DNA of 32,000 nt. It comes from Paramicrosporidium saccamoebae KSL3. Lineage: Eukaryota > Fungi > Cryptomycota. A program made the position numbers and the translations under genes. Positions 18,816-19,833 of this stretch are shown in pieces. The stretch spans positions 54,229 through 86,228 of the forward strand of contig MTSL01000205.1 in assembly GCA_002794465.1 (NCBI GenBank), read 5' to 3'. The notes below the pieces were generated by a model. It was not told the DNA's origin and did no database searches. It saw only the letters and a program-made list of their open reading frames with translations. Each line of letters starts with the position of its first letter. Within the stretch, counting starts at the first letter, position 1.

Positions 18816-18831
18816 GGCATTTAAAAATGCC
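18816..18831 (-). other. Histone 3' stem-loop element (H4)
   Basis: Sense strand GGCATT-TTTA-AATGCC (6-bp stem, 4-nt loop), 26 nt after the H4 stop. Confidence 0.8.
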
Positions 18832-18857
18832 ATTGAGTATTATGAACAGACGGATGC

Positions 18858-19169
18858 TTAGTTTCCGAAACCGTACAGAGTACGTCCCTGACGCTTGAGC
18901 GCATAGACAACGTCCATGGCAGTCACAGTCTTACGCTTGGCGTGGTCAGTGTAGGTAACAGAGTCACGGATCACAGACTCCAAGAAGACGCGGAGCACAG
19001 TGCGGGTCTCCTCGTAGATCAAGTTGCTGATACGCTTCACTCCTCCACGGCGAGCCAGACGACGGATAGCCGGCTTGGTGATTCCCTGGATGTTGTCACG
19101 TAGGACCTTGCGATGGCGCTTAGCACCTCCCTTTCCCAAACCTTTTCCTCCCTTTCCACGTCCAGTCAT
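18858..19169 (-). CDS. H4: Histone H4 (8 substitutions relative to canonical)
   Basis: Near-canonical 103 aa H4 sequence, intronless. Confidence 0.98.
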
Positions 19170-19386
19170 TCTTCAGTAATGTGTCGTTGACGATGTCTCC
19201 CCTCGTCCTTGGCCCTCTTTTATACCGTCGACCCCGGCTTCGCTTAGGGTTCGGGACGCGTCTAATTTTTCTGCATTTTCCCTCCAAAACTGGGCGGGAG
19301 CCAATGGAATGGCGAGGCGGGCCGGGGCAATTCCCGCCTCCCGGCGAGTATAAGAGGACGGGGGTGGTGGGGGCGTCATAGTCAGT
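19170..19386. promoter_or_regulatory. Bidirectional H4/H3 promoter
   Basis: TATAAAA on the minus strand (19218-19224), TATAAGA on the plus strand (19349-19355), CCAAT (19301-19305), ACGCGT (19256-19261) and GGCGGGA/TTCCCGCC boxes. Confidence 0.7.
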
Positions 19387-19800
19387 ATGGCCCGCACCAA
19401 GCAAACCGCCCGCAAGTCCACCGGAGGCAAAGCGCCCCGCAAGCAAATCGCCACCAAGGCTGCCCGCAAGTCGGCGCCCTCCAGCTCCGCTGGCATCAAG
19501 AAGCCCCATCGTTATCGTCCCGGAACTGTTGCTCTCCGTGAAATCCGTCGCTACCAGAAGAGCACTGAGCTGTTGATCCGCAAGCTGCCTTTCCAGCGTC
19601 TCGTCAGGGAGATTGCCCAGGAGGCCAAGACTGACTTGCGTTTCCAGAGCACTGCCATTGCTGCCCTCCAGGAGGCTGCTGAGGCTTACCTTGTGTCCTT
19701 GTTCGAGGACGTCAATCTCTGCGCCATCCACGCCAAGCGTGTCACTATCATGGTCCGCGACATCCAGTTGGCCCGCCGCATCCGTGGTGAACGTGCTTAA
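19387..19800 (+). CDS. H3: Histone H3 (divergent, one-residue tail insertion)
   Basis: [10 protein letters not shown] tail and histone fold, 137 aa, intronless, divergent from H4. Confidence 0.98.
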
Positions 19801-19817
19801 TTGTCCCCTATACATAC

Positions 19818-19833
19818 GGCTTTTTTAAAAGCC
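19818..19833 (+). other. Histone 3' stem-loop element (H3)
   Basis: GGCTTT-TTTA-AAAGCC (6-bp stem, 4-nt loop), 17 nt after the H3 stop. Confidence 0.8.

Follow-up and report, generated by a model that had tools for sequence, protein, structure and literature searches.

The histone H3 and H4 genes of Paramicrosporidium saccamoebae are each followed, shortly after the stop codon, by a hairpin with a 6-bp stem and a four-nucleotide loop. Judged from its sequence, this hairpin is a known type of element, ordinary in appearance; its lineage is unexpected, its flanks are variant and a candidate second signal accompanies it. The elements exist at both genes, are specific to histone genes, have a fixed orientation and are strongly conserved, and their spacing is kept. 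They probably represent a retained SLBP-type histone 3′-end signal in the Paramicrosporidium lineage, with cleavage between the hairpin and a conserved downstream element. What we infer from this arrangement is a protein that binds the hairpin, a site of cleavage, a lack of poly(A) and a link to the cell cycle. A first-pass annotation of the same DNA had proposed that the lineage keeps an SLBP-type histone mRNA pathway, and that interpretation is partly supported.

The window, by which we mean the whole 32,000-nucleotide stretch of DNA that was analysed, lies on contig MTSL01000205.1 of assembly GCA_002794465.1 (Paramicrosporidium saccamoebae, Rozellomycota). It has high gene density, few introns and a GC content of 45–53%, and the contig as a whole is at ~48% GC, in agreement with the published value for the parasite. 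P. saccamoebae is an intranuclear parasite of amoebae belonging to the Rozellomycota, with a genome of 7.3 Mb, 3750 genes and 47% GC (eLife 2017, PMC5701793). Histones, SLBP and stem-loops are not mentioned in the genome paper or its supplements (PMC5701793). The locus was taken to be fungal-like from its letters alone, and this was right: P. saccamoebae belongs to an early-branching lineage related to fungi, and the literature treats the stem-loop system as lost in fungi. The histone genes and their hairpins are arranged as follows.

18816-18831, minus strand: stem-loop in the H4 3′ UTR, GGCAUU-UUUA-AAUGCC, 26 nt past the stop codon (18858-18860), with 5′ flank CAAU and 3′ flank UACAAU.
18858-19169, minus strand: histone H4 gene, 103 aa, intron-free, with C-terminal GFGN (open reading frame and translation; called gene).
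19170-19386, no strand: putative divergent H4-H3 promoter region, common to both genes (read off the sequence).
19387-19800, plus strand: histone H3 gene, 137 aa, intron-free (open reading frame and translation; Pfam Histone annotation).
19818-19833, plus strand: stem-loop in the H3 3′ UTR, GGCUUU-UUUA-AAAGCC, 17 nt past the stop codon (19798-19800), with 5′ flank AUAC and 3′ flank UAU.

H4 on the minus strand and H3 on the plus strand form a divergent pair. Three motifs can be read off the sequence of the region between them: TATAAAA for H4 (19218-19224, minus strand), CCAAT (19301-19305) and TATAAGA for H3 (19349-19355). A gene for a phenylalanine-hydroxylase-like protein adjoins H4. The next gene on the same strand as H4 begins within 181 nt. 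In alignments the H3 protein shows the motif EDVNLC...TIMVRD, a signature of the clade. A Stenamoeba transcriptome H3 among the homologues raised the possibility of host contamination or of transfer from amoebae, which was rejected: the Stenamoeba protein is of the generic type (EDTNLC...TIMPKD) without the clade signature, and the contig is compact like the published parasite genome.

Both hairpins proved exact in sequence, coordinates and distance from the stop codon when compared with their first description. They share the GG start, the 6-bp stem, the UUUA loop and a TA directly 3′ of the hairpin, and what distinguishes the two copies is a compensatory T-A/A-T exchange in pair 4 of the stem. 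The pattern GGCWTTTTTAAAWGCC, with two or fewer mismatches allowed, has two matches in 32 kb, namely the H3 and H4 hairpins, against 0.06 expected; this count was reached in none of 100 shuffles. A chance origin of the hairpins is excluded. The 32-kb window has six hairpins with perfect 6-bp stems and 4-nt loops (the same palindromic sites on either strand), of which only those of H3 and H4 start with GG and end with CC. Both stem-loops are formed in the predicted minimum-free-energy fold. Their stability is about -6.6 kcal/mol, and the 6-bp stem is AU-rich. The original observation of hairpins after H3 and H4 is confirmed.

We compared the locus with 22 related loci (L002, L004-L011, L133-L141 and L147-L150). 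These were collected by searching for identical proteins, starting from H3 and H4 and continuing with clade members that turned up in a homology search otherwise dominated by generic or duplicated histones. Their sources are metagenomes, assembled public sequencing runs and a second NCBI assembly, GCA_020047435.1. Gene order is mostly kept among them (ATPase, H3, H4, hydroxylase, Sec6). Small open reading frames that adjoin H3 in these relatives were considered as Sm-like proteins and rejected; only two have any Pfam match and the others none, and those two resemble transmembrane segments, one of them being the C-terminal end of a P-type ATPase.

All 42 of the H3 and H4 3′ ends with enough sequence in the 22 loci carry the hairpin on the sense strand, and no further copy occurs there. 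Across 14 lineages the 16-nt hairpin is 95.5% identical, versus 60% identity at the fourfold-degenerate sites of H4. The spacer between stop codon and hairpin measures 17–54 nt overall, and that of H4 (26–54 nt) is unalignable. The comparison supports hairpins that are specific to histone genes, always in sense orientation and under strong purifying selection. The GGC...GCC base and the two U-A pairs at the stem's top are invariant in every clade sequence. Only two variants occur among the relatives: a switch of stem pair 4 from U-A to A-U, which is confined to one sub-clade, and a UCUA loop, changed at position 2, in H3 of L147 and L148, with UUUA everywhere else. The flanks are more variable, with AAAC or CCCAAAU on the 5′ side and UCAAUU on the 3′ side in other lineages. 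Over the whole stem, 96 of 96 cells are paired in 16 distinct sequences, and when the partner columns are slid by one position pairing falls to 62.5–75%. The covariation involves a single pair and probably reflects one evolutionary event.

On these alignments, the covariation at pair 4 fits a DNA palindrome equally well. The hairpins might be read as double-stranded sites for a transcription factor, an insulator or an origin protein at the ends of the histone pair. The stem arms are a perfect inverted repeat, the double change from T-A to A-T keeps the palindrome as well as the RNA pairing, and no G-U pairs were seen that would prove constraint at the RNA level. A symmetric DNA site, however, would not be expected to keep a constant orientation, and here the non-palindromic loop (TTTA or TCTA), the asymmetric flanks and the downstream element lie in one orientation relative to the gene in 42 of 42 cases, on both strands. 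The hairpin also always stands just past the stop codon, whereas its distance from the promoter varies. We therefore consider a DNA-level site very improbable.

What SLBP recognises in animals is present in full in the hairpin: its stem has 6 bp, with G-C, G-C and C-G pairs at the base and U-A pairs at the top, and its 4-nt loop carries uridine at positions 1 and 3. Of the 16 positions of the stem-loop core, 14 equal the consensus of the Rfam histone stem-loop model RF00032; the remaining two form a compensatory pair. Human histone genes have both UUUA and UCUA loops, and SLBP contacts loop uridines 1 and 3 (PMC4604434). The variation seen in the clade thus sits where the animal system tolerates change. 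As in metazoans, the element lies on the sense strand of the 3′ UTR of core histone genes (17–54 nt past the stop here), has GG and then C at the base of its stem, and carries a UUUA or UCUA loop. A second, A-rich conserved element follows the stem at constrained spacing in both systems, with no AAUAAA nearby.

The description of the hairpins as animal-type nevertheless holds for the stem-loop and fails for its surroundings. Where metazoans have CCAAA on the 5′ side and ACCCA (ACCCA/ACCA) on the 3′ side, the flanks here, which are partly A-rich, read AAU, AUAC or AAAC and UAC, UAU or UC, respectively; AU pairs also make up more of the stem (UUU/AAA). The downstream element, which starts 8–10 nt past the stem, contains C and U, unlike the purine-only metazoan element, and is absent from the H3 gene of the window. 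At the Rfam gathering threshold (34 bits) neither the window nor 8 related loci gave a match. In E-value mode RF00032 is the sole Rfam match in both hairpin regions, with 16.1 bits for H3 (model positions 6-21) and 14.6 bits for H4 (model positions 1-46), so the proposed check against this model came out below threshold. Since the core matches and the flanks and score do not, the hairpin is, as far as its sequence tells, SLBP-type in the parts that SLBP reads and not a member by the curated Rfam criterion. The metazoan system is defined together with SLBP, U7, Lsm10 and Lsm11, and the likeness described here is one of RNA elements alone.

The off-consensus flanks and the missed Rfam threshold are also what would be seen if the resemblance to an SLBP ligand had arisen by convergence. 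An unrelated protein, RNA-binding or an enzyme of RNase III type, would then read the hairpin, or the hairpin would by its structure make RNA polymerase II pause or terminate on closely packed genes. SLBP is postulated in this lineage, H4 must terminate within 181 nt, ahead of the next same-strand gene, and in two sub-clades a larger hairpin stands directly after the H3 stem-loop. Against this, the match extends to stem and loop length, to both ends of the stem (GGC base, U-A top) and to uridines 1 and 3 of the loop, with a variant at loop position 2 only. An AU-rich 6-bp hairpin of this stability would be a weak structural block, and the hairpin follows histone genes only. Because the SLBP-read features match and the orientation is the same in 42 of 42 cases, convergence and a DNA palindrome are both less likely, and convergence we regard as improbable.

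Comparison of the relatives also revealed a second conserved element beyond the hairpin. In the window it follows H4.

18797-18807, minus strand: conserved downstream element AACAAAAUCAA, 8 nt past the H4 stem; candidate histone downstream element (second processing signal).

The consensus of this element is AACAAA(A/G)UNAA, with AACAAA invariant in 16 aligned sequences, and across 14 lineages it is found 8–10 nt past the stem; variants of H4 include AUGAA, AUUAA and AGUCAA. Within the close clade no H4 is without it (in L149 it has the form AAAAAAAUCAA), and it is also present after H3 in most lineages. The statement that no shared downstream element is visible is refuted by this comparison, and the accompanying suggestion of U7-independent processing thereby loses its basis. 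The two other matches to the element in the window both lie inside coding sequence, which argues that it is not a general 3′ signal. A second invariant element at 8–10 nt from the stem is what a two-part processing signal would be expected to show.

A covariance model of the hairpin plus the AACAAA element (model R1) gives full-length matches of 45–63 bits at histone 3′ ends only, including 4 loci outside its building set. A metagenome scan with GGCWTTTTTAAAWGCCTA, aimed at H2A and H2B loci, returned at least 120 contigs; among the matches listed, none had a histone gene upstream. These unrelated contigs match R1 in the hairpin part only, at 19–31 bits. The bare 18-mer is therefore common background, probably made up of bacterial terminator-like hairpins. 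A pattern scan for the hairpin combined with AACAAA gave 0 matches in viral contigs.

H3 of the window and of its sub-clade departs from this arrangement. Here the AACAAAAU element is absent and is replaced by a structured element.

19834-19885, plus strand: structured element, a nested hairpin starting UAUCUG, directly 3′ of the H3 stem-loop; replaces AACAAAAU.

An RNAalifold consensus from 5 lineages contains 18 pairs in the structured element, or 24 when 6 of the stem-loop are included, and 3 of the pairs have compensatory changes. Folding of 19801-19885 gives a z-score of -2.66. After the H3 stem-loop of L139 a different long hairpin occupies the same position. The downstream element cannot be strictly required, since the window's own H3 does without it.

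We also looked for conventional polyadenylation signals around the two genes. The absence of AATAAA 3′ of H3 and H4, noted at the outset, was borne out. The 459 nt 3′ of H3 contain no AATAAA, ATTAAA or similar hexamer. In the region 3′ of H4 the only candidates are the AACAAA of the conserved element and a single AGTAAA at +87. The AGUAAA is not kept in the closest relative, L005. The count of six genes with AATAAA on their stop codon needs correction, as the window has five such long open reading frames. The general poly(A) signals of P. saccamoebae are loose and differ from the AACAAA element. Motifs of the UAUACA/UGUAUA type, which resemble the polyadenylation efficiency element of yeast, are modestly enriched after stop codons in P. 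saccamoebae sequence (4 observed versus 0.55 expected), and one of them lies directly upstream of the H3 hairpin.

Because of this enrichment and the motif abutting the H3 hairpin, polyadenylation downstream of the hairpin is possible. The stem-loop would then be a histone-specific regulatory hairpin, possibly bound by SLBP, in a 3′ UTR that is polyadenylated further downstream, with AACAAAAUCAA serving as a yeast-type positioning element and the UAUACA-like motifs as efficiency elements. Stem-loop and poly(A) signal can coexist in histone transcripts, as in Physarum (PMC8600027) and in some invertebrates (PMC1872034). The more distant metagenomic relatives L151-L154, which have partial synteny and 39.5% GC, carry degenerate hairpins, with the 15-nt GGCCUUUUUAAGGCC after H4 and a 5-bp GGGCU-UAUU-AGCCC after H3. 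They have no AACAAAAU element, and AAUAAA follows 40–95 nt downstream of the hairpin. The AGUAAA 87 nt past the H4 stop could be counted on the same side, but it is missing in L005. No AAUAAA-like hexamer is available in the 459 nt after H3, and the AACAAAAUCAA element is an invariant 6-11-mer at a set distance of 8–10 nt, unlike the loose general poly(A) signals. We judge a polyadenylated 3′ UTR of this kind to be unlikely, though it is the strongest of the alternative readings and carries some weight.

For the favored reading of a retained SLBP-type signal with cleavage after the hairpin, we searched for the corresponding factors and for other histone genes. A local HMM search for the SLBP domain covered 945 kb and 11 loci, including ~170 kb of clade sequence (from a genome of 7.3 Mb), and found none in the clade. 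Its sole match, the soil-metagenome SLBP P0126 (locus L143), is unrelated to the clade and was set aside. Querying with the human SLBP RNA-binding domain, in an index that finds close relatives within ~1.75-fold length, gave among the matches listed only vertebrate fragments of up to 137 aa. In an exhaustive SLBP (PF15247) search, among the best 150 of 3044 family representatives, those that are named are arthropods and the rest, judged by sequence, look metazoan. The Rfam U7 model has no match in the window or in the related loci searched. A U7-like RNA might be expected to carry UUGAUUUUGUU near its 5′ end; a search of ~140 kb of clade sequence for the complement UUNAYUUUGUU found no such RNA, matching only the elements in antisense and two sites in coding sequence. 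H2A and H2B genes are absent from the window, the 10-kb extension of the contig and the related loci, and the extension contains no histone or SLBP gene.

A retained 3′-end signal of this type would work as follows. The H3 or H4 pre-mRNA would fold the 6-bp, 4-nt-loop hairpin soon after the stop codon, and an SLBP-like protein would recognise the stem by its GGC base and U-A top, and the loop by uridines 1 and 3. AACAAAAUCAA, whose distance from the hairpin is constrained, would be recognised by a second factor, which could be a protein or a small RNA of U7-like type acting by base pairing. A shared CPSF73-type endonuclease would then cleave between the hairpin and AACAAAAUCAA. The resulting mRNA would end a few nucleotides past the hairpin without a poly(A) tail, and in this hairpin-ended form its histone-type processing, translation and decay would be coupled to DNA replication. 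Whether the clade keeps the complete two-signal system, in which the downstream element is read by a U7-like small nuclear RNP alongside an SLBP-read hairpin, is a separate matter, and we consider it rather doubtful.

The full signal has a limited distribution. No comparable hairpin stands in the first 300 nt past the stop of the H4 genes of Rozella allomycis, the best-known rozellid, and Basidiobolus ranarum (one gene copy each); in Basidiobolus ranarum, AAUAAA follows 12 nt past the stop. The view that the pathway was lost in Dikarya is correct for that group and too narrow as a limit, since these Rozella and Basidiobolus copies are also without the hairpin. With the hairpin absent there and degenerate in L151-L154, the full signal therefore belongs to a broad Paramicrosporidium-like clade and not to early fungi generally.

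Davila Lopez and Samuelsson (2008) reportedly found SLBP together with histone stem-loops in Dictyostelium, alveolates, Trypanosoma and Trichomonas, and the system is said to occur in many protists and in no fungi. The case described here resembles these protist systems in having an SLBP-type hairpin after histone genes in a non-animal lineage. It differs from them in lying on the fungal side of the opisthokonts and in being known from hairpins, whereas the protist systems are backed by SLBP genes. An ancient origin followed by patchy loss would fit the occurrence in both protists and Paramicrosporidium.

Reviews describe histone mRNA processing based on the stem-loop and U7 as lost in fungi. 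In yeast and other Dikarya, histone mRNAs are polyadenylated and SLBP is absent (PMC3315300), and the same holds for Cryptococcus, with polyadenylated histone mRNAs and no SLBP (Cryptococcus preprint). The literature on SLBP and fungi yielded no report of a fungal SLBP or histone stem-loop, within ranked results that papers on early-diverging groups might escape. P. saccamoebae shares with the Dikarya a divergent H3-H4 pair, compact and intron-poor genes, UAUACA motifs in 3′ UTRs and the same kingdom-level neighbourhood. It differs from them in the presence of the hairpin, where Dikarya have neither SLBP nor hairpin and polyadenylate their histone mRNAs.

Cleavage by a U7-type 'molecular ruler' is usually described as an animal innovation. 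If the two-signal reading is true, U7-type cleavage would date back to the ancestor that animals and fungi shared. In that case the system would have been lost repeatedly, in Rozella, Basidiobolus and Dikarya, and L151-L154 would be a snapshot of loss. The finding of a strongly conserved SLBP-type hairpin, with a second element at constrained spacing, on the fungal side of the opisthokonts makes the loss of the histone stem-loop system later and patchier than assumed. It also offers an organism whose compact genome (7.3 Mb, 3750 genes) would allow the minimal machinery to be catalogued, and it makes testable whether a U7-like guide RNA predates animals. Natural variants within this group, from the H3 genes in which a structured RNA has been swapped in to the distant relatives that combine a degenerate hairpin with AAUAAA, could reveal how such a signal is replaced or decays.

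Outside a histone context the hairpin sequence alone is non-diagnostic, because the bare 18-mer GGCWTTTTTAAAWGCCTA is present in at least 120 metagenome contigs (L012–L131) and none of these has a histone gene near it.

Directly 3' of the H3 stem-loop, the window carries a second structured element:

19834–19885, + strand: nested RNA structure that includes three compensatory pairs.

Within the sub-clade formed by the window and loci L002, L005, L008 and L011, this structure replaces the AACAAAAU element, the conserved candidate downstream element, after the H3 stem-loop. At this position the H3 3' region of the related locus L139 carries a different long hairpin, CCAUCAGA...UCUGAUGG. 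The structure could be part of the 3' UTR of the convergent gene, or could act as an alternative signal for processing or termination.

In more distant relatives, the ENA metagenome contigs L151–L154 (39.5% GC, synteny partly kept), the hairpins of the H4 and H3 3' regions are shortened or degenerate: a 15-nt GGCCUUUUUAAGGCC and a 5-bp GGGCU-UAUU-AGCCC. Wherever the loop is 4 nt long, U is retained at loop positions 1 and 3. The AACAAAAU element is absent from the H4 and H3 3' regions of these contigs, and AAUAAA lies 40–95 nt downstream of the degenerate hairpins. These hairpins could represent the signal in decay or in an alternative form. The Rozella allomycis H4 gene has no 3' hairpin and is solitary, with no H3 partner:

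L144/L145, 10001–10399: Rozella allomycis H4 gene, with three short introns.

A gene for SNAPC1, of the snRNA-activating complex, lies approximately 3 kb upstream of it.

The neighbours of the histone pair in the window are as follows:

17372–18676, − strand: biopterin-dependent aromatic amino acid hydroxylase with an ACT domain (phenylalanine-hydroxylase-like).
20260–22593, − strand: large ankyrin-repeat protein, 777 aa.
22895–25327, − strand: its large ankyrin-repeat paralogue, 810 aa.

The hydroxylase gene directly follows H4 in the same orientation, an adjacency conserved across the clade, which leaves H4 transcription at most 181 nt in which to end. Both ankyrin-repeat proteins contain many copies of an 'LEWY...NP...' repeat, and their genes sit between H3 and a P-type ATPase. 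Since the ATPase directly adjoins H3 in relatives, these two genes appear to have arisen by an insertion or expansion specific to this lineage.

The histones themselves carry clade-specific substitutions. H4 (18858–19169) terminates in GFGN, and in relatives in GFGH or GFGA, as against GFGG elsewhere. H3 (19387–19800) has STAIAAL where other eukaryotes show SSAVMAL or SAAIGAL, and EDVNLC and TIMVRD in place of EDTNLC and TIMPKD.

Another gene model in the window has an unusual domain combination and spans several ORFs as a single 1012-aa protein:

7680–11244, + strand: trehalose-6-phosphate synthase, trehalose phosphatase and NAGPA (phosphodiester glycosidase) domains.

In five long ORFs of the window (stop codons at 82, 6943, 10183, 11244 and 29288) the stop codon overlaps an AAUAAA, and in several others an AGUAAA; UAUACA/UGUAUA motifs are modestly enriched immediately 3' of stop codons. 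The overlaps suggest that 3' UTRs are very short here and that stop codon and poly(A) signal are fused, as in other compact parasite genomes.
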